From NCBI GenBank assembly GCA_965285935.1, contig OZ260666.1:13144001-13208000 (forward strand): a DNA stretch of 64,000 bases, read 5' to 3'. This stretch comes from Ophelia neglecta (Eukaryota). Under the pieces are notes generated by a model, which did not search any database, was not told where the DNA came from, and saw only the letters and a list, made by a program, of their open reading frames with translations. Of this stretch, positions 2,065 through 32,050 are shown piece by piece (position 1 is the stretch's first letter; each line of letters begins with the position of its first letter). The translations under genes were made by a program, and so were the position numbers.

Positions 2065-5000
2065 CTGAAAAATATACACAGTTAAGGAAAGGTATAAAAT
2101 TAATTCAGTATTTTTTAGAATAAAAAAGAGTTGGATATAAGAATACAGGAAAAAAATATGCATGCAAATCAAACTCATCTGATAAGACATGAATTGGGAG
2201 TTTGATTAGTATTTTAGTCTAAATTGACGCGTTAAACCGATCGTTGGACCTTTAACAACCTTATCAGGCAAACGAGTGTGTTTGTGCCCTACTTCGAAAT
2301 CAGACCAGTGGACAAGTTAGCAAATATAATTCTAGTAAAGTAAGTAACAGTTAATATATTTGTCAACAGGCTGGATTGAATGCAAGGGAGCTTGAAATAT
2401 ACTTTATGAAGGGGCATGTATCCTCGGCCAATTCGGAGAGGATACTTATTGGTGTTCACAGGACTGCCATTGGGGATATTAAACCAAATCTCGAATTCTA
2501 AATTTACTGATAACGCGAATATAAATGTGATTCAATATTTCATTAAACACCAACCTTCGTTCGTTGCAGAATTTTGGTCCCTAGAGGATAATTCCATTTA
2601 TGAAGCATTACAACACAAAAGCTATGTTAATCTGCACTATTATATATAACTGTAATTGTATCATAATCGTAAACCAAACAATAGCTAGGCAACGGTAATA
2701 TCAGGCAGAAAACAGGAAACTCCTTTATATAGTACATACCATGAAAGAACATTTCTTTACTGTCATTAGCAATCTCGAACATATCTAGGATTTTTTCAAC
2801 ATATCTAGGACGACACATTTTTTAGCAAGCGACTCAAAGTGTGTTTTCTGTAAATTTTCGTCAATATTGTACCCTTAAGTTTCAAAATTTGATTCAATCT
2901 ACAGAAATTCAAATATTTAAGCCTCCTATGAAATGAAAACGGATTTTTCTTTCTTTCCCGGAGGCGACATGAATTCCATACCTCTAGATACTGTAGGTGC
3001 CATAGAATGCATTTTTAGTAAAACATAGTAAATTGATATATTTTGACCAAATTTAATACATAACTATTTTAATTTTCAAAATCCAAACATGAGTGCAATT
3101 ACGTGTAAATGAATATGAAAGACTAAGCTAATACCAAAAGTGTGTACTTGTCAACGTTATTAGTCACGCACACGGAAGTTGAATTACCTTTACTTGATGC
3201 TTTCTTTTGCGTTGCAACCTGCACACTACCAACAGGACGGCAGCTACTATCAAAAAAAGCAATGCGATCACAGCGACAATAACGGCGACAAGTTGAAATA
3301 GATTTCCACTTTCCTGAGAAAGGGGTATATAAGTTGTAGTTGACGGATCTCCTAGAGGGATGCTTGCTGTCGTTTTATCTAAATGATTTTCAGCTGATGG
3401 ATCTGGAATACAGAGTGAGGCATTGAGCGTTAAAAAGCTCGGTGTCAAGTATTTTAAGAAACACATAAACCCAATAGAGAATAATGGTTTTAATATTAAT
3501 TTTGGGGTTATTAGTGCGAAAAGCAACAACATACCTTTGACTTCCACGTAGAAGTGTGTTAGACTGGGATTCAATCCAATGAACGATAGTTTCGTTACAA
3601 GTTGTGTATCGCCCACTTCCGGAAATGCGAGTTCTGCTTCGCACTGCAGTTCTTTGTCAGGTACAATTCTACAGTCGTAATGGTCCAAGTCTGCGGATAT
3701 GATACATTGGACGCGAGGCTCAGCTTTAGGTATAACTACAACCAAGGTAAGGTTTCCTGGCTTTTCGAGCTGCAGATGCTTGTTATTATATACAAGCTCG
3801 ATCGTGGGCTCGCCTAGCTTTTCTGTTAGGTACAAAAACGGATAGTAATACTTATGTCGGTCTGGACAAGCTGAAATAAAGAAAATAATAAATTTAATTA
3901 GAGGCAAATGATGTTTAGAGGTTGGTATTCCGTCTTTTGTGTTTCCTTGGAAACAACCTTAAACGTATTACATTAGTCAACCTAATTGATTTAAAATAAA
4001 TGGAAATTGAAATCAACCTGACCATGGCTGAATAAATATTTAACCTTTTGCGCGAGGTTTCAATAAACTGGGCCCAAATATATCCACAAGATGGGTTAAT
4101 GGCGTTGTACATTGAACATGTGATCCATCATGGCCACTTATTTAGGGCTAACAGGCGTTAATACTTCATTGGTATTCATAAAAGACTGTTTGGTCTACGT
4201 AAATGTCATGTTACATCGTTACATCGCGAAATGTTCTAAACACTAGAGTATTAAAACAATGATTAACAGCAGTTCACGCGTCTAGAATACATACACACAA
4301 ACCCGTTTGCCATGGAAAACGCTACTTTGATTCGGTTTTGTCCAGGAGTTGCGTTTATTAACATCATCGCCTTTAGGCTTTAGGTTAAAAATATAAATTA
4401 TCCTCATTTCAAAACTCCCAAGGTTTACTCGAAAAGTTTATAATTATGAAAAAGATTAACACTGGGTGGTCTACTTTAATTAAACTCGTTTACGAAGTTT
4501 TAGTTTACTTATAATACTGACGTAACCTAGCGCTGTAGAACTAAATCGGTTGTTGTTGATGCTTATTTGCATATTACTTATGTCAGATAATGTGCATTCG
4601 GTAAAATTTACCTGTTGATTTTATGACCTTCAGTTCGGCGGCATCGATTAAAGCGAGTTTTTCTCCTTTTATATATATCTCTATGTCATATTGCCCGCTA
4701 TCAGACAACACAGTTTTTTCTATTGAGAATCCAATATAGGTAACATTATCAATCAGAGAGACATTGTTAGTATAGTAACTAGCATTCTCAATAGCACTAT
4801 TATTGATTAGCATCTGATACTGGGGTAGCGATTTTACGAGTCGTATGTAGTCAACCATGCCCAGACTGCGGTTGTAGTTCCACAAGAAGCGGGCGTTTTC
4901 CCCATCACAGACGTACAGTTTATCCGGGCGTTGCAGCCAGTCTGAAAGAGAAACCGCTATTTAGGTTATTTCCCAATAATATTGGTGTGTGTGTTGTTGA

Positions 5001-16738: not shown

Positions 16739-19700
16739 CTATAACAAGAAGAAAGAATATGTCATACTTACGCATAATGCATAAGCAAAAGTGTGTTTTA
16801 TACTGTTAGTCCGGGCCCTTAGCGAGTTTTAAGGGGGGGGGGGGGGTGGTTCAGATTCGTCTACAATTACCAAATTTCGCCCAGATGTAGACCAGAACGT
16901 ACTCTTGATTTTTGGAGGGCGCCGAGACAGGCGCTCACTAGGGCAGGAAAATTGGTTAAATCAAAGATTGCCGCCAGCCGGAATGCCTTAATATCATAAC
17001 TTCGGAGCTAGAAGTCATAGGATCATAAATGAAAGCATTATTTATAGGCTTTTACCTCAAGGATTCCAAATATTACCTCAGTTTTAACATTAAAGGTGAG
17101 GTTAACCCCCTAATGCATATAGAATGTAATTAGGCTGATTTGAAAGTTATAGACATGCAACATTTTAGAGTCAAAGATTAGATCATATTACAGTTCACTA
17201 CTGATATACAAACTATGGCAAATAAAGCCAAACTCATAAGGTTTACGAATCATCTTAATGGTCCAAGTCCTTTTCCTCTGTGTTTTTATATTACAAACAT
17301 AAATGTGGCAACAATTAAGAATGCTACCCCGCGTTTGTTACAAATATGCTGAGCTCGAGTCATGTGGTAACTACAAACTGTAATGTGATGACAACTCTTC
17401 TTTTCACAATTGTCACGTCCTGATGTAGATATTGCAGAGCATTTTCACTATGAATAGCAAAGACCGTTAGGCAGACCGTGGTTCACTTCGATCAGGAAAA
17501 TTGTCTGACATTCTGGACTGTATCAAAATGCCAACTGTACAAGCAGTTCCATCTCCTCATCAACGGCGTGGTACAGGTCCACGGACTGGGAGTAGGGGAT
17601 GACAGCACATGCATCCCAAAGCGTAATTAGAATCGTGGGTTCCTCAAAAATGAGGAAAACAAAAAGGACTGCATGTTTTACTCAGAAAGGAGATTTTCTA
17701 GAAAGATATGAGTGGGAGGTTCCTCTTAAGCACCAAGTTGGAGTGTGCCCTCTAACCAACCCTATGATGTATCAGCCCTCCAACCCTGTAACCACTCTGA
17801 GGCAGACACAAGGATATTCCTCTTCGCAAATGTTGCAGCAAAGGGTCACAGAACAGCCTAAATATGTCCCGTTGACAGCGAATAAGTACTTCTTGCTGTA
17901 CCATACTTCACCTCACTTGGTTTTTCATAGCTGTGGGCGGGCCATGGTATTGGGAAAAATTTCCATGATATTCCCAAACATGATATCTGGTCTCATCTTT
18001 GACCCTCCAAGTCGCTGGCATTGCCACTCTTCCATGCAATCACAGGATGTGATACAACATCACAGTTCCTTGCCTATGGACAGAAGACTGCCTGGGCATC
18101 TTAGCAAAGCACTCAAGGCTTCACTGAAGCACTGGTGGCCCTCACCCGAGACCCATGACTCTTCACCCTTCTGCCTCCAAACATGCAAAAGCTAAAAAGA
18201 TGCTTGGTAATCATGTACAGAAAGTGCTGTGGTTCGTCCAAGGTCTATGAAGCCAGGTACCGTATGTTTACCTATGGGGACATAGCAGTCAAATCTGTAG
18301 ATAACACATGGAATATTATTGTGTTGTTATCTTTGCCTGATAAATATATGTCTCAAAATTGCAGAGTGCAAAATGCGGCAGCAGGAATACTGACTGGGTT
18401 GCCCCTTGTAACCCTATTATTCCCATCCTATTTGAACTCCACTGGCTACCAGTGAATTTCGAAAAACATTTGTTTTAAGTTTGTATGCTGGTTTTTAAGG
18501 TATTCTTACATTTGAACCCTTATTTAACAAAAAGGTCAGCTATATGTTTATTGTTGGTGGCCCCCAGGTCAAGAGCAGTAATGCAAAGCTAACACAGGTG
18601 TTCCACCCCTGCACAGCAGATCTGTGGAACTCTCTTCCATGCAATTTAGAATCTATTTAGAATTTAATGATTTTAAATATCCAAACAAAAACTCAATTGT
18701 TCAGGGTGCTTACGATAAACTGATATGTGATTATTCTAGTCGTTTTTATATATTCAATATTCCTTTTTTGCTAATTCGTATAGCGTAACTTTAAATTGGT
18801 TATAACTATGTATTGATTGGTCCAAATTTTATGCAGAGTATAATTTGTTTTATGTATACATGTATGTACAGCGCTTTGAGCTTATTTTGGAAAAGTACTA
18901 TGTAAACGTTTAAAAATTATGCTTTACTAGATTTGATAATAATGAACAAACCTGTTTTGATTGTTGATATTTGTGGCGATAGAACAAAGCAGCCAGTACA
19001 CTGATCAGTGCGACTATTGTTAAAATGACGATCACCACAATTAATACAACAATCAGTGATATGTTGTCGGTACCGTTGTCGGAACATAATGGCGAGGTTA
19101 CTGTTGATGTAATTGGTGCCTTTTGGGTTCTAGAGGACAAGGTTTCCATTTTATATTGGGTAGTCTGTGCCGAAGAATCTATAAGATAGAAACCGACAAT
19201 TGTAAAGCTAGTTTCCATTGACAGAAGAAAGCAACAAAGAAATAAAAGAAAAATAGCATTGTAATATCAAGAGCAGTAACGACTCACACTAAAGAACATT
19301 GTACCGAAATTAAGGATACCTGTGGACTTAATATAAAATGTTGTTATGCTTGGTTCACGCGCCACGAATGCAAGTTTGACTATGACTTCTTCATCCTGTT
19401 TACTTGAAAAGAAAATCTCCACTTCACACTCCGTCTCTATATTTTTCCTTCCACTGCAGGCTTGAGCCATTTGGTTCATGTATATAGTACACTCTACAGG
19501 TGGCTCAGCCGCTGGTATCGTAGATCGTAGGGTTATATTTCCAGGCTTGTTCATCTCTATCCGTTTGTTGTTATATATAGGTTCCGTCACAGGCTTCCCA
19601 CACTTATTTGTTATATAGAGAACGGGATACTCATATTTTGGACGGTCAGGGCAGGCTGAAATATTAACACAGTTAATGCTTACTACATAATAGATGGTCT

Positions 19701-20921
19701 TATATCCTAGATTGTATGTGTTCCCATAAAATAATGATTATTTATTATTAGGGAAAGCTTTGGTATTAACTGAAGAAGCATCTTTTCTATTCTGTTTTCT
19801 TCAATATGTTTTCCCCTCTCCCTCTTCTCTCATTTACATGTATAATGAATATACTTAAACATATTATTATAAGTCCGGGTAAATAAGCTGATCTATAGCT
19901 TCACCCTATTGCTAAATATATGTTGTATACAATCATTTATGGATGTATGTATGTATCAAAATAGCAATAAACTGCTGAAAACTGAAAATATTTAATTTTA
20001 CGGGTTTCGATGAAAACAGCTATATTTGCACACTGCCTTGTTATAGGTAATAAAGAATGATAAATTAACCTTTACCTGTTTTTCTTATCACAATTAGACT
20101 GGCAGATTTCGAAAGTATCACGTCTGCATTCGCAGGAAGAATGTTTATCGAATATGTACCATTGTCCGATATTGAAGCATTTTTCAGGGTGAATCCATAG
20201 GAACTATCATTAATGTAAGTAAACCGGGGGTCGACCTCTAAGGGATCCTTGTTCGGGTACATTTCCACCAGATTTTTCCAATCCGGAGGGTCTTTTGTAA
20301 ACTGTGCAAATTGAAAAATCTCAATAGCATGATGGTAGTTCCATATCAACTGGGTCGATTCACCTTCGCATACGTACACTGGATCCGGGCTCTCTAGCCA
20401 GTCTGCAAATAGTTCCATATTAAAATTACATGAACTTTGATATGTTCTTATGAAAGTTGTTACTTAACGATAAGCAACAAACTGTAATGTAATAGATAGA
20501 TACCAATCGTCATTTAAAGTCCAAACAAGATGTAACAAAGAAATTATGAACGGATAGTGAAAACTACTATTTTGACAGATATATAAATATCAAACCTGCA
20601 CGAAGAAACGAAAATATTTGTTTTGTTTTTTCATAAACTCTGAGTTGGGAACATCGACGATTTTCTTTACTTGCATGTAGTTCAGTTTTCTTATTATTAG
20701 TTTGATTTTATAGTTGGAGCAGATTATATTTGTCAAATATTGCAATGCTAGGCACAGCATTCATTAATGAAACAAGTATTATCACATCCGATACGTGGTG
20801 TATAATTTTGTGATGGTCTAAAGCAAATATATGAGTTCTTACTATTATTTGGCTGATCGCTTCCGATCAGGTACACATGTATAATCGGTATAATTAAAAC
20901 TTGAGCATTCATTCGCGCCAT
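16613..20921 (-). CDS. Gene B: type I IgSF membrane receptor, paralog of gene A, short cytoplasmic tail without ankyrins (~364 aa)
   Basis: Exons 20921-20843, 20402-20076, 19655-19320, 19178-18952 and 16738-16613. GT-AG introns with phases 1,1,1,0; 1095 nt in frame; AATAAA 14 nt after the stop. The first coding exon and start codon are less certain. Confidence 0.82.
16807..18285 (+). mobile_element. Degenerate Academ-like DNA transposon (XPG/FEN1-like nuclease transposase remnant) in the last intron of gene B
   Basis: Broken frames give SLRSGKLSDILDCI, QPCNHSEADTRIFL and GIGKNFHDIPKHDI..L*PSKSLALPLFHAITGCDTTSQFLAYGQKTAW. These are the EADT and GCD motifs of XPG-like nucleases, as in Academ transposases. 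In-frame stops are present. Possible terminus TAGTCCGGGCCCTTAGCG at 16807. Confidence 0.72.
18357..18720 (+). mobile_element. L2/CR1-group LINE 3' fragment
   Basis: RVQNAAAGILTG followed by frameshifted PIIPILFELHWLPV, the typical L2 ORF2 C-terminal signature. Confidence 0.75.
18952..19178 (-). CDS. Gene B exon 4, stalk + TM
   Basis: Thr/Ser stalk, then ISLIVVLIVVIVILTIVALISVLAALFY, then RHK. Donor CAG|gtttgt, phase 0. Confidence 0.9.
19320..19655 (-). CDS. Gene B exon 3, second extracellular domain
   Basis: 336 nt, the same length as gene A exon 3. ACPDRPKYEYPVLY...KPGNITL...AEPPVEC. Confidence 0.9.
20076..20402 (-). CDS. Gene B exon 2, atypical V-set-like Ig domain
   Basis: 327 nt, phase 1-1. 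WLESPDPVYVCEGESTQLIWNY...RFTY..YGFTLKNASISDNGTYSINI...ASLIVI. Confidence 0.9.
20843..20921 (-). CDS. Gene B putative signal-peptide exon (coding part; exon probably begins at 20953)
   Basis: MARMNAQVLIIPIIHVYLIGSDQPNN with phase-1 donor A|gtaaga. A strong polypyrimidine acceptor ctctttctctcctccag at 20955-20954 implies a further upstream exon (candidate donor |gtaagt at 21084). Confidence 0.55.
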
Positions 20922-23829
20922 TAAAGACCCATAGTGTAGGAGGATAGCCCGTTCTGGAGGAGAGAAAGAGAGCAAACAATCATCATATTCTTTCAAATGT
21001 ATTACAATAGTGTAAATGGTATGCCAAAATATATTTATACAGCGGGTTTTTTTATGATCCTAGTAGTGTAAAATTTAAACTTACTTTTTGTTAAGATCCG
21101 CATATTCCCATGGATTAGCCCATGATTGGTCTATTTTGGACCATTTTTATTCCCAAAGCTTGTATCTTTCTTGGTTGATTTTATGGTAGAACTGCGAAAA
21201 TGGAAAATACCGACTCTTTATATGACTAATTGTTCTGACCCACTATTGAATACAAAACAGTGTTAACGACTGTGTAAATGCTGTTATATTTTTAGGAGTG
21301 TTTGTAATCAGACTATTCAGTGGACTTTACCCCAAAGCGTGATTTGCGCATCAGACAATGGATCTACATTAGAGCCGGATTTTAATAACCCTGACTGATC
21401 GTAACTAGGAATCTACCACATATCGAGTCAGTAAACATACACGAAGACTTAAAATTACCGTATCCTATGTCTCAACATGGGGACCAATTAAATTATTTTA
21501 CATGGAAATGCATTCATGCTTCGTCATGCATATATGTGAATGAATATAAATTCACCTGTTATTACGACCGTCCTACCCTGTGATAAAAGTGATTTTTTTT
21601 ACTTGACAAATAATATTTCCGAATTAGAAGTTCATATAAAATCCCGCATTGACTCGACAATTGTTATACTGTGCGTCCGGATAAAACGGGAAATCGTCTT
21701 CTCGAAAAACAATCATTATTTCCATTTAACTCAATTAAGGGGTTTCCTCTACTTGCGGAGCTTTAAACAAGTCCCTGAATCTTTGTATAAGAAAGCCGGC
21801 CATAACCAAGTCAATTAATAAGTGGTTTTAGGCACAATATATGCTGAAAGATTGGCCCAGGCTAGTTGTTTCAAGAAATCTTTTTGTTATGGCGCAAATA
21901 TATTTGAATGTTGATAACAAGTCACAACATGAAATCAGGTTAACAGTGCTTAACATATATGTACAAACATATAATGCACTTGAACCGAGCAAACATTGAT
22001 ACACTGTACACCTTCCACGTACAATGCATCCGTTGTCAATGTTGCAGGTCTGTTTTTTTGCCAACAGTTTGATAAGTTTATATAAAAACCCATAAAATTA
22101 CTGATAATGCAATAGTAAATATATTGCATAAATCACGGCTTGATAATGAGGAAGTTAATATTTATTTACCTTCTTCTATTTTCATAACCTGCACAATCGT
22201 TTCCAGATAAAACCTTTGCACAATTAGACAACATATAGCAATGGTGTTTATGTAGTCAGAAACTTTGTTTACCAACTTTGCTCCTCCTAGCAACCGGCAC
22301 GAATCAACAGATTACGCTTCACGTAAGTGCACGCGATATCAAGTGTACAGGATATAGAGGCTAATCGCCTTAAAATGACTACAAATACCACCCACTTTAA
22401 ATTATTTGGGAAATAGTGAAACGTTTCATTGCTAATAGCATGTTTCTTTAGATTGGTGTTCAACACGGCCATCTTGTGTCGCGTGTCGGGGGCTGAGTTG
22501 TAAAGGCGAAATGGGGTGGATGGATTTGATTTCACACGAACTTTGTTGAAGCTACAAGCAAGTCTAGTCGTCATATATGGTGTTCATGTACCGCCTGTAC
22601 CAACTGGCGTTGTTTATAAAAAACGTCTTTATATACTCCCACCTTTGTCTAGTAAAACATGAATGTTGACGGCGGAACGATTTTTGTATGGCGGCCATCT
22701 TGGATTCAGTCTAGTGCGACCCCCTAAATCTAAAATTATTTGCTGCAAGTTTTGTCACATTAGTTTCATGATTTAAGTGTCAAGTGTCTAGTTCACATAA
22801 TTGTGAAGGTCAAGGAGAACAAAACGTGTCTTCATTTGCAATTTATGGCTACGGCACAAAACCAGACTTGAATAGCCTTACCCTTCAAATGAACGTCAAC
22901 CCGCACCCTATTCCAAAGATATAAGGCTTTATCTCCCCCCCCCCCCCCCCACACACACACACACCCATTGTGCCTCCATAAATGACCTTGAAATCCGCCT
23001 GTGCTGCTGAACACATCTTTATGAAACCGGTAAATACAGGATGCCTACTTTGTTTTGTTTTAGTGATACTTTATGTTTGCCTCAGTGGCTTACAGCGTGA
23101 ATTAGAGAAATATCAAATTGATGTAAGCGGTGCAACTCATCTAGGTATGCTGCAATTCACGATGATGGATGTTTATTACACAATGAGTTGTCTTATTAAA
23201 ATATCATAGACAAATATAGTATATAAGTAAGTAAGTAATTTTATTTATCATGATGTGCGAAACTACAAATTCATTGTTAATAAAAAGAAGACAAATTAAC
23301 GAGTGTCTTATATAACCGCAAAATAAGCTGTTATAGGATACTTATTTTAAAAATATTCTTTAAACAATAAAATGATACACAAGCTGATACCTTATAGAAA
23401 AATTGTGTTTAAATGGAAAGTTGTTGATAGTAGCAAAAGACACAATGCACATATATTTCGCGTGTGAATGTATATCTACAATATGGATAAAGGTTGTTGG
23501 CTCTAAAATGTGCACCTTGCGAATGGAAACGTCTTGTTTTAGGAATTCAAAGTAACAATATTCATGGGAAATTTAGAAATATTTATTATCAGTAAACTGC
23601 ATAAAATGTCACTTGAGTGAAAGCAATTGAAACCCTTAACAAAATTGAATTATATATCTTATTGTTACATAAAAATGAAAATGTATTTCTGGAAATCAGT
23701 TATTCCCAACTTCCTCCTTGTGAAAAAAAATATTACCCATGTGGAATCAAATACTAGATTCATAAAATTTAAGGCTGCTTCAATACAGATTTAAACCAAA
23801 AAGTACAGTATAGAGCGAAGTCTGTCTAG

Positions 23830-24045
23830 AAAATAATGACGGATCAAGATGAAGATGACTGTATGAATATGCAAAGAGTGGGTTGGACCATAATCCTGGA
23901 AGAGATCCCTCATATATCTAGCGGCCATTCCATTAATGCACTTGTAGCCGAAAGAGCTCATAATAAAGTTCATGCGCTGCTTGATAGAAGGCCAATACGG
24001 TGACCGCACAACAGGTGACATAATAGAGTCACTTTTGCAAGTAGT
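23830..24045 (-). mobile_element. L2-type LINE fragment
   Basis: MSPVVRSPYWPSIKQRMNF...YKCINGMAARYMRDLFQDYGPTHSL resembles the L2 consensus ITPVLxxLHWLPxxQRIxFK...YKxLxGLAPxYLxDL. Confidence 0.7.
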
Positions 24046-24216
24046 ATTAGGCGAACGCGGCCCTTTATTACCCATAGTCCTAATTACTCTTGTTCATCTG
24101 ATTATTATATTGCAATAGCTTTTGGTAAATATCGATATCTGTCGCATAAGCGTCAAGGTATCAAAGCGGATATACTTCGTATTAGAAATGCATATATACA
24201 ATTTGGTGGTCAACTT

Positions 24217-24302
24217 TCACTGGAGGGTGTTGTCAATATCCGGAGACGCGTTCAAGGAATCACTGGCAATGTTGTTCTCGGCATTGGTCTTTCCTTTTCT
24301 AC
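24217..24302 (-). CDS. Gene C terminal exon, short cytoplasmic tail
   Basis: Acceptor tattcatctcaag. RRKGKTNAENNIASDSLNASPDIDNTLQ*; basic residues directly follow TM2. Confidence 0.68.
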
Positions 24303-27300
24303 CTTGAGATGAATAATACAATAAAACGTTAACATAATATAGGTTTGTTTGACACAAAGAACATTTCAATCACCAAAAACGAACAAAGAAACAAGGGACC
24401 GGAAAGTTGATTGAGGACAAATGTTAATTATTCAATCTGGCACGGTGGTTTAAAGTCGACGATGAACATAATTGATACAACACAATTCGCTAATACTACA
24501 ATAAATGCACTAATTTAATATTGCATATCATTGCACGATTGATAATTCCGTTTATTGGAACTACTCCATAATCCCAGCGGCGACGATCCAAGCTGATCCA
24601 AGATAAAAAACAATGGTTGACTGAATGTGATAAACCATCAACTTATCTTAGAAATTCCACGATAGTTTTTCAAACCATCCATACAACAATGACGGATGCC
24701 TCAAGTAAAGTGTACAAAAGATGATTTGTTTTTCGTAAGCAAAAAAATAAAAAATTCGCCATCAATAAAAACAACTTACGACGAGGGCAACATATTATCC
24801 CAGACAAAATTACTGCAGTACAAACACAAACGGAAGTGGACGCTAGCAGGGCCAGGTTGAAACCTTCCAAATAATTCATATCCGCGTTACTCTCTAAAAG
24901 ATAAAACATTTATTTCAAACATATAATTTTAAAGCGTCTATCATTAATCGGTAAAATATGTGTGTAAAATAACTTATCACTACCATATAAAGAAGTCAAT
25001 TGTCATTAACAGGTTAAAATTGTCTTTTCCCCTAAAGTTGCAATGTAAAGTTAGTTATTAAAACTCCATATGCATACCTGAATACATTGCTCTGGTAGTG
25101 ATTGGTAAAGTGGAAAACGCGTCCTTCTCGCCTGCGGGTTTTAAGCCTAGAACTAACCAATAATTGAGGCATTTCAACAAAAGCGATATGCCTCATAGGC
25201 ACTGTGAATATATTGACCAGTGATTTTTTTAAATGTTCAATAATGAATTATTATTACACATACTTTTCAAATTTATATTTTTCACCATTCGATGGCTATT
25301 GGGGATTTGTTATATTTATTTCTCTAATGTGAAAACTTTGAACAAGGCAATTGATGAGGGCAATCAATCATGACAACGAATGATTACTGAATGTGTTCTT
25401 TCCTACCTATATATACATAATTACGTGATGCGGATTCATACTTGGATCCCAATTCCCGGCCTCTACAAGAGTAGTTCAAAATACTGTATTCCCCCACTGC
25501 TGTTGGTAAAGGTAGTTCATGTTTGTTTGTGCCATTCTCGATAGTCAAGCCATTGCACAGCCAAATATAAGTCATTAAAGGTCGGTTTTCTTCCGGAAGT
25601 GATGCGGAAGAAACTTTACATGCTAACCGGGAGTTTTCAATAGAAATGGTTGCCGGTAATGGTTTCTCTGCAAAATAAGTCAACACATTTTTAGTTTGTG
25701 ATAGTGCAAAAAAATAATGCAGGCCTGGAAGAATAAATAACAACACTGCATATGTAAACATTGGCCATTGTGTTGCTGAGGGGCTGAGGTAGTATGATGT
25801 TTATTGTTTTATGACAATTTATGAAACAAAACAAAGGAAACAATTGATAATTCAAAGGGACGGAGCCATTAAGTCGTAATATCGGCCACCGTCAGAAATT
25901 GCTATCTACAACGAACGTAATACTGTACAGTAGTTTTCGTTTCACAGCGGTTAAGAATATATAATGCACGCAAGCGGACTTTTATTCCTTGTGGCTATTA
26001 AAGCAACAATTATAGAAAATAATAATTCGGCTGTACTCACCCCAAACAAAGACGACTTTAAATTCACTGTAATTAGTTGTATGACAAGTGTATGTCCCTG
26101 CGTTTTCAATAATTACATTTGTCAAAGTAATTATCACCGACGATTTATTTGTCAAACTGAATGTCATTGTATGTGTTGCTTTTTGGTCGCCCGAGGGAAC
26201 CAACGAGGAGTTGCGAATTATGAACAAAAGACGTCCTTGGTGATAGCAGTTGAAAGTCTGCACCTTTAATGCCTCTGGTGGATTCCAAACAAGGCTGATG
26301 TTATCTCCTTCATAGACTCTTTTAAAACCATTATCTGGGCATAACAATGTTTAAGGAATGTTCAAATAGTTGTAATAAAAACAATTCACAAAATATAGCA
26401 ACCCGACACAATTTTATGGAGACGTGTTACTTACCTGGGACATATGTAGTTTCTTCCGAAGGATGAAGAGAATTAGATGAAGAGGACGCTGTGAATTCTG
26501 AAATAAGGGTCCCGATTTTATGTTTTGGAATGCTAATAATATAATAATAATTCTATATATTTATTAAGCGTATAGTACCGGAAAACCACTCGTAGCCGCG
26601 AAATGTACCATGTTGGCCAAGGAATGCAATAAAATACGATAAAACAGGCAATATGCATTTATTATTTTCAAGAAGAATGTAATGCGTTATTGTCTTAATA
26701 AGTAGTATGACATCGAATGTATTACCCATCAGACGGCTGGTTGTTATCAGTGACGTATCCTTATCTGTTGCTACGACGGTGACTCCGCCTTGGGACGACA
26801 CTGAAGGCAATGCGCCGGGGAAAGAATTATTTTAATAAACAAAAACAATATCATTTGTCTTCTAACGTTGTTATAAAGCAAGAAGACACCTGAATACGCC
26901 AGAGAGGAGGGTAGGGACAGGAAGGGGGGGGGGGGGGGGCTGGAGATTACTTTACTCTATTCATTGATAAGGAACTGCTTTCTACATTGTATAATCATCT
27001 TTTCTATAATGGCGGATTAATTTCTTTGAGTTACTGTCATAAATAATGTTCTGGAAAAAAATGTACCACCCGATTACCACGTTGAGAAATTATATGTCGG
27101 GTTCCCATGGAGTGCCGAGAGATAAAGGGAGAATAAGCGCGACTTGAGCTGTAGCATAAACCTACCTTAGTGTAAAATATATCCTGATACGTTTACATAG
27201 CATAGCATATCCGGTTGCATATTCTATCAATATACGATTAGAGGTTAAATTGAGGGAGGAGGAAATTAATACGGAACTTACCTTTTTTTATACCAAACTG

Positions 27301-28161
27301 CCAAACTAGCCCAATGATTCCGGCGAGAGCCATTGTGGTTAACAACAGTATTGCTATCAAGCCATATATTCTTAGAAATTTGCGTTTTTGTCCCCTATGG
27401 CGTAAAATCAACCTTTGATAAATGTTCTTTCTTCCGGCCTGTTCGAACTGGATGTGTGCCCTTTCCTCGCTGGACGTTCTTCTAGGATACTCATATCCGC
27501 TGCAATCTCGCCGAGTGTCATTTACCTGGCTTGGTCTTGGTCTGTTCACACTATCAGTGATGGGAAGCTCTATGATTTCGGAGTAGCAATGGCTACCGTT
27601 CGAACTGGATGTTTCGCCAGAGGTTTCGTCGGTTTCCGATGAATCATTGATGACGTGCACGCTGCGAGGTAGCTTCGGAGAGCAGTCTGCAATTGTCGCG
27701 ACCACGTTGAAATGTTTCTTAATCGATGTCTTCGGTCTCGCACCTTGATTGGTGGCATATGAATAAGGATATTTCTGAACAGAAGTTCCATGCCCAGGTT
27801 TATCATGTAATTTGTTTTCTTCTATGTTTTGATTGTTAACTGCTCTATCTTGGTGTTCATCCTCGAAAGGCACTTCATAACCATCATTAGGGACCTCCTG
27901 GTCTTCATTTTTTTCGTCGTTTCCAGTTTCGTGTCTTACGAAGGCCGAGGCGTTAGAACAATTAACATTGCCATGAGTACTTCGTGGAACATCCGGGAAA
28001 GTCAGAAGGTCTTTTCGCAAGTTGGTTGTGGCGGGAGGCTTGTAACACGCCGTTTCCCCCCTGTAATTCCAAGAAGGGCGCGGGGCCATATCGTCACTCA
28101 TCTCTGTTAGTTCAAAACTAGTTTTACCGGGCTCGATAGGGAAGAATCCACCCTCGGCCAT
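24217..28161 (-). CDS. Gene C: predicted two-pass membrane protein with Tyr-motif N-terminal cytoplasmic region and two extracellular Ig domains (8 coding exons, ~613 aa)
   Basis: Exons 28161-27282, 26800-26726, 26497-26435, 26334-26041, 25667-25407, 25146-25078, 24893-24780 and 24302-24217. All introns are GT-AG phase 1; 1842 nt in frame ending TGA. Confidence 0.78.
24780..24893 (-). CDS. Gene C exon 7, second TM helix
   Basis: Acceptor ttttatcttttag. FNLALLASTSVCVCTAVILSGIICCPR; donor C|gtaagt. Confidence 0.8.
25078..25146 (-). CDS. Gene C exon 6, linker
   Basis: 69 nt, phase 1-1. GLKPAGEKDAFSTLPITTRAMYS; donor CAG|gtatgc. Confidence 0.65.
25407..25667 (-). CDS. Gene C exon 5, C2/I-like Ig domain
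   Basis: 261 nt. LACKVSSASLP...MTYIW...YSCRGRELGS has the canonical C-W-C core. Acceptor tattttgcag, donor TAG|gtagga. Confidence 0.88.
26041..26334 (-). CDS. Gene C exon 4, V-like Ig domain
   Basis: 294 nt. VYEGDNISLVWN...FNCYH...ITLTNVIIENAGTYTC...VFVW; donor GGG|gtgagt. Confidence 0.88.
26435..26497 (-). CDS. Gene C exon 3, Ser/Thr stalk
   Basis: 63 nt, phase 1-1. tatttcag|...EFTASSSSNSLHPSEETTYVP...CAG|gtaagt. Confidence 0.8.
26726..26800 (-). CDS. Gene C exon 2, Ser/Thr stalk
   Basis: 75 nt, phase 1-1. ccttcag|...VSSQGGVTVVATDKDTSLITTSRLM...G|gtaata. Confidence 0.65.
27282..28161 (-). CDS. Gene C exon 1: disordered cytoplasmic region with Tyr motifs + signal-anchor TM1
   Basis: 293 codons from ACAATGG. 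Motifs YEVP, YSEI, YEYP and YQRL. Basic RHRGQKRKFLR precedes IYGLIAILLLTTMALAGIIGLVW. Donor AAG|gtaagt. Confidence 0.9.
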
Positions 28162-29099
28162 TGTTCCAAGACGAATGGGACGGGAGTGGAAATATAACTG
28201 TATATGGTTTATAACATATATGTCCTCATCATTATCAGGTTATGCGCTTCATATAATTTGTTTACATAACGAAATGTAGATGACATCAATGTGTGTTCCC
28301 CTGCCATTTGTCTTTATATGCTTATGGTATTGTAAATTACAAGTCATCTAAACTCATGTTATAGTATTACCATGTTTACCAAAGAAAATGTATTTGGCTT
28401 CCTTTTGATCTGCACCAGTAAAGGTTTAACCTAAATTGGGATAATACTTGCGCTATTTCGACATGTTGGGAGTGCTTTCCAAGAGCGTATGCAAGTCATT
28501 ATCCATCAATTATTTATAATAAAGTGATCCCATGCAGAACTTTGCGACTATGCCAACTGTGTTAACCCAGGCACCCTTAATGGTGACAGTGTTTAACGGT
28601 CCTTTACGGTCCATTTTACGAAATGGGCACCGGCCAGTATTAACCGGTTGGTTGGGTGAGGGACAGGGTCGAAGATTGGGACAAAAACTAAATAGAGAGC
28701 GACAGGTGCTGTATTTTGACTGGTCTTAGAGTTAAGAAGGTTATATTTCATTTGTGCGGTTGGTTAAAATATTCATATTCAACCAAAACACCCATAACAT
28801 GACTTTTAGCAAGAGCAAGCGGATTAGGATGGGGCTGGTCCTGCTAACTTGGAAATTTGGCACTGCATTTAAACGATACAAAATATTTATTTCCTTTGGT
28901 AACATAAGCTAAGAAATAATCCGTCAAATTTAGGTGTTATGACATAGATGCTGAACTTCCACCGCACTCCCACCAGATTGTAATGCCTCCTGACGAGGGA
29001 ATAGGCCTCCTAAACCTATGATTGTCCACCCTCGGGTTATAAAAGAAGTTGACACGGAAGGTGTTCTTCGTCTAACAACAAAATGTAAAATATCATCCT

Positions 29100-29448
29100 T
29101 CAAGCTAAATCTCCAAAGTTATCTGTTATCGTCTTGTTTGTTAGATTGCCTATAACCTGTGTTGAATCATATATCATGACCTGGGTATTATGATTATTAT
29201 TATAATATTTTTTTTTCCTTTCTTTCCCCTAATCACTTCATGTGCCAAAGTTTGAGAAAAGTCTGTGTGTTGCTTTGTTTTGTTATGAGCACTTCCCAGA
29301 TCTTGGAAGTAGTGTGATCCTATAATAGGGAAATACAACTTTCTGCTGAACTGCTCTTTTGCCATGTTTTTTTTATGTTTCTATGTGCTGTAATATATAG
29401 TGTATTGTGTCTATTACCACGGCAATAAACACTTTTGAACTTTGAACA
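29100..29448 (+). mobile_element. Probable LINE 3' remnant
   Basis: Ends in AATAAA followed by a (TTTGAAC)2 tail; the upstream sequence is degenerate. Confidence 0.35.
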
Positions 29449-30680
29449 AAATTAAAAAAGTTTGGCATCCGCATGACTGTCGACATTGGGTTTTTAATCA
29501 TAAGATAGCAGAGCCTTTGAAGTCAAATCAAGAAGGAAGTACATGATTACATATTTATAATTCAACCTGCCAAAAGACATTCCGCATTAACAAAAGAACA
29601 ATGAAGATATGTTTAAGAATTTCAGGATATAGCAAGAGGAAGCTTTGTGGGTAGGCCTGTTAAACGATTTAAATGTATGCAGAGTTTGAGATATGAATTA
29701 CAATACCACGGACCTAGCCCCTAACCCCTAGAAGAGAGTTGAAAACTGGAAGCTAGAAAGTAGCCGATGGCGCTTATGCCATATTATGATGGAAACACGT
29801 TGTTAGGAAATTTGTGTGTCTGTTGTTTAGATTTCAGGTGGGGACCGTCAATTTTTCTAGCAATTTTTCTCGCCTACAGCAAGTGCCAATATCATGCAAG
29901 ACCAGTACCATTTTCCTTTCAAATTGTTCTTATTGAATATTGTAGCCTGATCCTTATTTTGCTTATTTGGGGTTGGCATAAAAACACACGAGCGGTAAGG
30001 CCTAAGGTAGTTGCATCTACATCATGAATCAAATAAGTTTTTCTAAGCCAAAAAGTAATGTACATTTTGTGACACAATTGTAAACATCTTACTTAACATC
30101 GGAAGCTAGATATAAAAACACACTATTATTACAGGTAAGAAACAATGATAAATAAAAAGTGACTCCGACATAGTGACCATTTGTCAGGGGTGAGAGCATA
30201 CGGCATAGTAAATAGCTTGTGAGGGCTGAGGTGCTGATATAACTCGTGTGATTAATACAGACGCTGGGCCAGTGAATAGAAAGCACTAAAGGCCAAAATA
30301 ATGTTAATATTATTACACAACTTTCACTTTGGCACGCCGAAATCTGATGTTATTTTCTCTAAGCTGTTCGTGTAATATTTCTATAGCAACAGATAATTGT
30401 CTCTCTAAGATTTTACATGATAAGAAACAGTTAATGTTAATTGACATTCATCCACATAATATGGATGTGATGTTTAGCTTACAGTCACCTATTAGATAGA
30501 TGAAAGGTTAGCTTAGCAGTAAGTGTAGCAAAGAGTTCACATGAGCCATATATACAAAAACTATAATTCTGTACTTATTCTGTGATTATCGTGCAAACAT
30601 TGATATTTGAAGCCCTGGGTAAGGGCTCTAACGTGTGTGTGTACTCGTTTTTCATTTGACTATATATGTGTCAATGGAAA

Positions 30681-31629: not shown

Positions 31630-32050
31630 AGTGTATGTGTATAGACAGGTTGTGGGTGTAAAGGATGGAGGTGGGTTTTTAGGAAGACGGTGGTAGTTTA
31701 GGAAGAAGGTGGGTGGTATTATAGGAAGGATGTGGGTGTATAGGAAGGAGGAGGTGGGTGTATAGGAAGGAGGTGGGTGTATAGGAAGGAGGTGGGTGTA
31801 TAGGAAGGAGGTGGGTGTATAGGAATGAGGAGGTGGTTTTATAGGAAGAAGGTGGGTGTATAGGAAGGAGGTCGGTGTATAGGAAGGTGTAGGGTTTTAA
31901 GGAAGGAGGTGGGTGTATAAAAAGGCGGTGCGTGTATAAGAAAGCGGTCGGTGTATAGAAGGAATGTGGGTTAATTTGAAATGTGGTGTGTGTGTATAAA
32001 AAGAGGTTTGTGTTTAGCAAGGTGGTGTGTCCCAGGATGTATAGGAAGAA
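31630..32050. repeat. Purine-rich 19-bp minisatellite (TAGGAAGGAGGTGGGTGTA)n
   Basis: About 15-20 degenerate tandem units, cleanest at 31763-31819. Confidence 0.9.

Follow-up and report, generated by a model that had tools for sequence, protein, structure and literature searches.

A predicted double-anchored immunoglobulin receptor gene and its family in Ophelia neglecta

Introduction

In textbooks, the surface receptors of the immunoglobulin superfamily (IgSF) are type I proteins. A gene of Ophelia neglecta raises the question of whether such a receptor can be held in the membrane at both ends, with its immunoglobulin (Ig) domains in a loop between two transmembrane (TM) helices. The gene lies on the minus strand at positions 28161-24217 of a 64,000-nucleotide stretch of contig OZ260666.1 (assembly GCA_965285935.1, positions 13,144,001 to 13,208,000 of the forward strand). 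This stretch is called the window below, and coordinates refer to it unless they are given in Mb. An initial annotation of the window had described the gene as encoding a double-anchored Ig protein. To judge from the sequence, the best overall explanation is probably a double-anchored Ig receptor with an N-terminal cytoplasmic tail. The gene belongs to a lineage-restricted family of about 30 IgSF receptor genes.

Gene structure

The gene is modelled with eight exons, all borders are GT-AG and every intron is in phase 1. The frame is open across the eight exons, from an ATG at 28161 to a TGA at 24219-24217. The features are as follows.

Exon 1, 28161-27282, minus strand: 293 residues, the N-terminal region and the first TM segment (TM1).
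Exon 1, N-terminal part, 27370..28161, minus strand: amino acids 1-264, predicted cytoplasmic, rich in Ser, Thr and acidic residues.
TM1, 27289..27369, minus strand: amino acids 265-291, predicted N-in signal anchor, with a conserved W-Q-F-G at its end.
Exon 1 end, 27282..27288, minus strand: KK and the first base of a split codon, then the phase-1 donor AAG/gtaagt.
Exon 2, 26726..26800, minus strand: 75-nt Ser/Thr-rich stalk mini-exon, AG/GT borders, phase 1 at both ends.
Exon 3, 26435..26497, minus strand: 63-nt Ser-rich stalk mini-exon, AG/GT borders, phase 1 at both ends.
Exon 4, 26041..26334, minus strand: V-like Ig domain (the V exon).
Exon 5, 25407..25667, minus strand: C2-type Ig-like domain (the C2 exon).
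Exon 6, 25078..25131, minus strand: 54-nt membrane-proximal stalk mini-exon, AG/GT borders, phase 1 at both ends.
Exon 7, 24780..24893, minus strand: the second TM segment (TM2, FNLALLASTSVCVCTAVILSGII), a juxtamembrane CC and the first part of a basic cluster.
Exon 8, 24217..24302, minus strand: C-terminal tail RKGK..., 27 amino acids, with the TGA stop and an AG acceptor.

The coordinates, residues and intron phases of the initial annotation were all found to be correct when the DNA was read again. The ATG of exon 1 has A at -3 and G at +4. Exon 6 is the least certain of the eight exons.

The gene model is well supported, because it is conserved within a gene family and across species. Exon 1 finds 32 matches in its own genome as a single sequence and 37 as a profile, which together represent about 35 loci. 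Most of them map to 10-17.5 Mb of contig C9, and the rest to C2, C7 and C8. At 31 of the 35 loci an exon 4-type or exon 5-type match follows 1.1-6.5 kb downstream on the same strand. The window copy was compared with 20 further loci that were fetched. A motif of the type W(Q/H)(F/L)(G/N/D) ends TM1 in 20 of these 21 loci, L021 being the one that lacks it. A phase-1 donor lies three codons past this motif in 19 of the 20 loci that carry it, and five codons past it in L018. Most of these donors are AAG/gtaagt, CAG/gtaggt or GAG/gtaagt, and most resemble the consensus MAG/GTRAGT. Past the donor the reading frames diverge between subfamilies and stop at different places. At the other end, homology among the 20 fetched loci begins exactly at the Met, and the sequence 5' of it is unrelated between paralogs.

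The downstream exons are conserved in the same way. The borders and phase of the V and C2 exons are retained in paralogs. A homologous TM2 exon of 99-114 nt, running from phase 1 to phase 1, is present in six subfamilies; its donor is gtaagt in four of them, and gttagt and gtcaga in the other two.

Relatives were also found on two contigs from a sequencing run of another organism, with a best identity of 37% to any copy here. Both contigs have a consensus-like phase-1 donor at the position seen in this family, and in one of them it lies three codons past a WRFD. The other has an exon-1-like exon, phase-1 mini-exons of 90 nt and 63 nt, and then a V-like exon carrying the SLxW, xxCY and DAG motifs of the family.

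Exon 1 is very probably the real first coding exon and spliced to the Ig exons, judging by these genomic comparisons. The initial annotation had joined exon 1 to the Ig exons, and this is borne out by the shared MAEGG start, the phase-1 donor, the linkage to Ig exons at 31 of 35 loci and the layout in the second species. The reading that exon 1 ends a gene lying upstream was rejected: there are no Ig exons or long open reading frames (ORFs) on the minus strand at 28.2-42 kb, and the exon has a conserved start and donor.

Five whole-gene copies with 95-98% protein identity lie on C9 at 12.59, 12.69, 12.78, 13.06 and 13.17 Mb (L009-L012 and the window copy). Their spacing is roughly 100 kb or multiples of it, which points to a recent duplication of a larger segment, probably with neighbouring Ig genes in it. 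Four paralogs (L013, L014, L015 and L021; C9 11.10, 12.91, 10.94 and 13.32 Mb) share an in-frame TAG between SNHN and ANCPK and lack the MAEGG start. They may be a pseudogenised subfamily, or have an extra intron or a downstream start. At C9 10.642-10.644 Mb, within the zone of exon-1 genes, two pairs of V and C2 exons (L048/L050) stand head to head on opposite strands about 390 bp apart, an inverted duplication.

Membrane segments and predicted topology

TM1, IYGLIAILLLTTMALAGIIGLVWQFGI, is an uncharged span of 27 residues (amino acids 265-291), and its best 19-residue Kyte-Doolittle mean is 2.64. It is preceded by RLILRHRGQKRKFLR, which holds seven Lys/Arg, and only KK follows it within exon 1. 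Over 14 distinct loci the uncharged span measures 25-32 residues. In these loci the 15 residues on the N-terminal side of TM1 add up to 76 Lys and Arg and five Asp and Glu, and the few residues left in the exon on the C-terminal side to ten Lys and Arg and five Asp and Glu. The excess of basic residues on the N side, which the initial annotation had described for the window copy, is thus a property of the family. The pattern looks like the signature of an N-in signal anchor and is unlike that of a cleavable signal peptide.

TM2, FNLALLASTSVCVCTAVILSGII, has a Kyte-Doolittle mean of 2.21. CCPR, a split Arg codon and RKGK come next; read across exons 7 and 8 this is CCPRRRKGK, and the placing of basic residues on the C side of TM2 also stands. 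As disulfide-bearing domains, the Ig domains must lie in the lumen, and TM2 has CC and a basic cluster on its C side; both termini are therefore predicted to be cytoplasmic. Paralogs of only 25-45% identity have this pair of hydrophobic segments too, with the exons in the same order and with the same splice phases, and the double-hydrophobic layout is therefore not a matter of chance.

The N-x-S/T sequons, which had been offered as a further argument for an extracellular loop, did not hold up. Five of them fall in exon 1 (293 amino acids), six in the loop exons (about 250 amino acids) and one in the C-terminal tail. They do not distinguish one topology from another, and were rejected as evidence on this point. 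A reading of TM2 as the signal for a glycosylphosphatidylinositol anchor was also rejected, on the grounds of the 27-residue hydrophilic tail that comes after CCPR and the split Arg, and of the conserved donor past TM2. The Cys-Cys pair after TM2 is a likely site of palmitoylation.

The predicted cytoplasmic region

Several motifs in the N-terminal part of exon 1 are conserved among paralogs: the MAEGG..FELxE start, DGYEVP, YPYSYA, TSSS..YSEI, YEYPRRTSSEER and NIYQRL. The tyrosines Y193, Y223 and Y248 are invariant, and the invariant tyrosine motifs before TM1 are HxYSEI, GYEYP and NIYQRL. There is also a run of TSSS and acidic residues, and an RRTSSEER motif. No conserved Cys pairs were found in the exon 1 region ahead of TM1. 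Tyrosine and Ser/acidic motifs of this sort are typical of cytoplasmic tails.

The motifs differ from the strict patterns of immunoreceptor tyrosine-based inhibitory motifs (ITIM) and activation motifs (ITAM), defined as (I/V/L/S)xYxx(L/V/I) and as two YxxL/I motifs 6-12 residues apart. The -2 position is His or Asn, and the tyrosines are spaced 30 and 25 residues apart. The conserved tyrosines are classed only as YxxI, YxxP and YxxL motifs. Among candidate sites, we take YQRL to be an AP-2-type YxxΦ motif and RRTS to be a site for a basophilic kinase.

The immunoglobulin domains

Exons 4 and 5 have Ig folds according to structure prediction, V-like and C2-like respectively. Exon 4 matches the Pfam V-set family (PF07686) with 23.3 bits, below the gathering cut-off of 26 (E 7.5e-5), and exon 5 has no Pfam match. 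AlphaFold2 was run for each exon with small alignments of paralogous exons. The exon 4 model is a beta-sandwich of nine strands with a predicted local distance difference test (pLDDT) score of 82.7. Its Foldseek matches are CD4 D1, IgLON5, antibody V and PD-L1 V domains, with template-modelling scores of 0.7-0.8 and E 6e-7. The exon 5 model is a beta-sandwich with a pLDDT of 86.7. In VIA-align it reaches a Z-score of 10.0 to Fc-gamma-RI D3, with further matches to FcRL5, FCRLA C2 and LILRB1 D2; FN3 domains reach a Z-score of about 8. Two Ig folds between TM1 and TM2, as the initial annotation had proposed, are thus predicted despite the weak Pfam results.

The exon 5 domain has a canonical core of Cys16, Trp35 and Cys67, all invariant among paralogs. 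The core of the exon 4 domain is non-canonical. Trp takes the place of the B-strand Cys (SLxW), Cys that of the C-strand Trp (FNCY), and the F-strand DAGxYxC is retained. W16, C29 and C83 are invariant, and SLxW and FNCY are invariant in 12 paralogs (alignment A1). The exchange, with the F-strand Cys kept, suggests a non-canonical disulfide between strands C and F. A pattern of the SLxW/FNCY type is also seen in relatives with a leader-type first exon at C9 3-4.2 Mb.

Selection and constraint

Among the five recent copies the exons (1827 nt) have one indel, of 3 nt and in frame, and the introns (2118 nt) have 17 (binomial p = 2e-4). Exons 2 and 6 have no indels among these copies. Exon 8 is conserved at 93-96% in four recent copies, and the differences in exon 6 are all non-synonymous. 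The ratio of non-synonymous to synonymous substitution rates (dN/dS) was estimated by exon in three paralog groups.

Window copy and four duplicates: exon 1, 0.98; V exon, 0.95; C2 exon, 0.26; TM2 exon, 0.16.
L016 subfamily: exon 1, 0.27; V exon, 1.0; C2 exon, 0.16; TM2 exon, 0.28.
L013 subfamily (figures based on few changes per exon): exon 1, 1.2; V exon, 0.30; C2 exon, 1.9; TM2 exon, 0.79.

The C2 and TM2 exons thus have values of 0.16-0.28 in two of the three groups. Overall, a fast-evolving V domain sits on a constrained scaffold, a pattern shared by many immune-type receptors. Relaxed constraint in the youngest copies is possible, and some members of the L013 subfamily may be decaying or spliced differently.

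Origin of the first exon

The V and C2 exon types far outnumber exon 1, with at least 130-150 scored matches in the genome. Many of these fall in the 3-5 Mb region of C9, which has no match to the exon 1 profile. Ten relatives of the V exon were read with flanks of 1.5 kb, and all ten have a leader-type first exon, of 24 codons in nine and 29 in L041. These exons sit 150-800 nt upstream of the V exon, and most read M(K/E)PMNIILILLTCQNI... Their donor is in phase 1 in every case (gtaagt in nine, gtaaat in L041). In the exon-1 subfamily, an exon for a cytoplasmic tail plus anchor stands at the place of this leader exon. An exchange of the two would be neutral for the reading frame, because both end in phase 1.

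Twelve loci of the subfamily were scanned between exon 1 and the V exon for a leader-type first exon, defined by an ATG, a hydrophobic core and a phase-1 donor. None was found in nine loci, and the other three have only non-conserved ORFs of 40-45 amino acids. No conserved alternative signal-peptide first exon, a possibility that the initial annotation had held open, was therefore found in this interval. A start in intron 1 of the window gene was also rejected: the ORF MILFLFIKIILSPAHCLQC just before exon 2 reads that exon in another frame and meets a stop within it.

In a maximum-likelihood tree of 22 V exons the two 5' exon types cluster, with two changes against a mean of 7.3 in shuffled data (0 of 500 shuffles as low). 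A single origin of the exon-1 type is possible on this evidence. The backbone of the tree is poorly resolved, and the apparently leader-type L041 falls among the exon-1 genes, beside L026. The proposal that the first exon replaced a signal-peptide exon is thus upheld in part. The presence of a leader in ten of ten relatives and in none of the subfamily loci under the same scan favours it; the direction and number of exchanges are not given by the V-exon tree.

L041 (C9 11.876 Mb) and L026 (C9 11.81 Mb) are neighbours with similar V exons, one with a leader-like 5' exon and the other with exon 1. They may represent a recent exchange of 5' exons, and L041 was read only 1.5 kb upstream. The long first intron of L021 (C9 13.32 Mb) holds two copies of a hydrophobic ORF fragment, ICVILAMFAFWSISLALLG, at oriented positions 3608 and 4922, which are probably a duplicated transposon insertion.

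Proposed receptor

From the observed exon structure, family conservation, pattern of charge and hydrophobicity and predicted Ig folds, we infer the splicing, topology, non-cleavage and signalling of the receptor as follows. Exon 1 would encode a cytoplasmic region of about 265 residues, probably disordered and carrying Tyr and Ser motifs, that runs straight into TM1. TM1 would be a long signal anchor, inserting with its N-terminal end in the cytoplasm. The later phase-1 exons would add a Ser/Thr-rich stalk, V-like and C2-like Ig domains, a short stalk and TM2 in type I orientation, followed by a basic tail of 30 residues with the Cys-Cys pair. The resulting hairpin would expose the Ig pair in a loop outside the cell and keep both termini in the cytoplasm.

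Such a protein would be a surface receptor, most likely signalling through its N-terminal tail, with YSEI, YEVP, YEYP, the AP-2-type YQRL and the RRTS kinase site as candidate docking or sorting sites. The receptor probably inherited TM2 and the short tail, as its anchor, from ordinary type I relatives. The receptor most likely originated when an exon for a cytoplasmic tail plus anchor took the place of a phase-1 leader exon. For the mature protein, retention of both anchors as a hairpin is the best reading, and we hold it with modest confidence.

Alternative explanations

Several observations weigh against this proposal. The topology call draws solely on the positive-inside rule and hydropathy, and TM2 of the window copy is only moderately hydrophobic, with several Ser/Thr inside. 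Exons 2, 3, 6 and 8 show no measurable sequence constraint. In exon 1 and the V exon dN/dS is about 1 among the five recent copies. The L013 subfamily shows no constraint on the C2 and TM2 exons and carries its in-frame TAG in exon 1. A HMMER search of 1.84 billion representative proteins, with exon 1 as the query, returned only two fragments, both from unspliced genomic contigs, and there was no usable match in Pfam or the ESM Atlas. Three public runs from one sample cover introns and exons evenly over 23900-29800 and contain no splice joints. Because introns are covered like exons, without splice joints, these runs are DNA; their variants were not used, as they may originate in paralogs of 95-98% identity. 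Finally, IGSF1 provides a precedent for cleavage after an internal anchor (PMC5841168).

Cleavage of this kind defines one alternative, in which the gene model is right and TM1 is a long internal signal sequence whose removal leaves an ordinary type I receptor and an N-terminal membrane stub. The two Ser/Thr-rich stalk exons directly after TM1 fit this idea, as does the small residue with which W-Q-F-G finishes, and the hairpin of CRD-Nrg-1 is later cut in its stalk (PMC2172983). We nevertheless think cleavage at TM1 unlikely, since its hydrophobic span of 25-32 residues is far beyond the length of a cleavable h-region. The sole plausible site, moreover, has Gln at -3, which by the general -3/-1 rule disfavours signal peptidase, and the lasting conservation of the N-terminal tyrosine motifs is easiest to explain if the region stays coupled to the ectodomain. 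Other isoforms might also be made instead of the hairpin or besides it. All introns are in phase 1 and any internal exon can thus be skipped in frame; skipping of exon 7 would give a type II single-pass Ig protein. The frame of exon 1 continues for 14 codons into intron 1 before a stop, and retention of this intron would give a tail-anchored protein of 307 amino acids with no Ig domain. Both outcomes are rather improbable: purifying selection acts on the conserved TM2 exon in two of three paralog groups (dN/dS 0.16-0.28), and the read-through sequence past the donor is not conserved between subfamilies and stops at varied places.

A still less probable view is that the five near-identical genes, the window copy and four duplicates, are young, silent or decaying, with the functional members of the family elsewhere. 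The near-neutral exon 1 and V exon of these copies, the in-frame stops in some paralogs and the fact that the public runs covering the stretch are DNA only would agree with this. Against it, every exon is open and all splice sites are intact in the five copies, which have a single in-frame indel against 17 intronic ones; C2 and TM2 remain at dN/dS 0.16-0.26 in the group, and a V domain with dN/dS of about 1 is also seen in diversifying receptors. The view that exon 1 and the Ig exons are two separate adjacent genes, linked merely by tandem arrangement, seems to us very improbable. The genes do sit in dense tandem arrays, and the linkage of exon 1 to the Ig exons is known from genomic DNA. However, most loci have no leader or start exon in the 0.8-1 kb gap between exon 1 and the V exon, where relatives have one in ten of ten. 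The consensus phase-1 donor of exon 1, fixed in position, matches the downstream phase-1 acceptors, and no Ig gene lies upstream of exon 1 within 14 kb in the window.

Comparison with known systems

A limited full-text literature search brought up no IgSF protein described as holding its Ig domains in a loop between two membrane anchors, and the double-anchor layout would be a new architectural variant of this kind of receptor. The closest working analogue appears to be type III (cysteine-rich domain, CRD) neuregulin-1. This protein is at first a hairpin with both termini in the cytoplasm, and a cut in the stalk then yields two single-pass molecules (PMC2172983). It is made from a distinct 5' exon, and other isoforms of the gene are without the N-terminal anchor (PMC2172983). 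In common with the topology predicted here, it has N- and C-terminal TM segments and a receptor-binding domain in an extracellular loop. The domain in its loop is EGF-like and not Ig, and its N-terminal anchor lies within the cysteine-rich domain. In the present family the N-terminal exon is fixed across the gene subfamily, and no alternative 5' exon came to light. None of the exons has an EGF or neuregulin domain in Pfam, and there is no sequence relation to neuregulin-1.

Like the proposed receptor, IGSF1 is an IgSF protein that has a hydrophobic segment within the chain, ahead of Ig domains, and is anchored at its C-terminal end. This internal segment works as a signal peptide and undergoes co-translational cleavage (PMC5841168). 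IGSF1 has its own N-terminal signal peptide and luminal Ig loops before the segment, where it is cleaved, and has no sequence relation to this family. The region before TM1 here is predicted to be cytoplasmic and is without an Ig domain.

The leader-type type I relatives at C9 3-4.2 Mb have a homologous V-like exon, with 37-44% identity and the SLxW, xxCY and DAGxYxC motifs. They share the phase-1 exon design and the chromosome, but they begin with a cleavable-type leader exon and have no match to the exon 1 profile.

Type II lectin-like receptors of natural killer cells, such as Ly49 and NKG2A, carry signalling tyrosine motifs in an N-terminal tail ahead of a signal anchor. They differ in their C-type lectin-like ectodomain and have no second anchor, and the strict ITIM/ITAM spacing is absent from the family described here.

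Other features of the window

The next gene downstream (20065-20996, minus strand) has a signal-peptide-like ORF, MARMNAQVLIIPIIHVYLIG, and a distant V-like exon, followed by just one TM exon near 19000. It thus has the form of a conventional type I Ig gene, 3 kb from the predicted double-anchored gene. A G-rich minisatellite of about 17 copies of 19-nt units is found at 31637-31971. It lies in a 10-kb stretch (30-40 kb) without long ORFs, in which the skew of G over C (GC skew) is 0.23-0.31 except for one 2-kb bin of about zero.

Significance

The chances seem to us about even that this is a whole Ig family with a two-anchor loop, an N-terminal signalling tail and an origin by exchange of the leader exon, possibly made as a regulated precursor that is cleaved in the stalk like type III neuregulin. 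If so, exon shuffling can alter the membrane topology of a receptor and not just its domain content, because the phase-1 exon design of Ig genes lets a 5' module be exchanged. The family would also be a natural test case for ligand signalling by a receptor tethered at both ends. Its genes belong to a megabase-scale array of fast-evolving Ig receptors, in which the V domain is neutral or under diversifying selection. The array and the evolution of the V domain suggest this family, from an animal lineage that has been little studied, as a candidate system for innate immunity or recognition.

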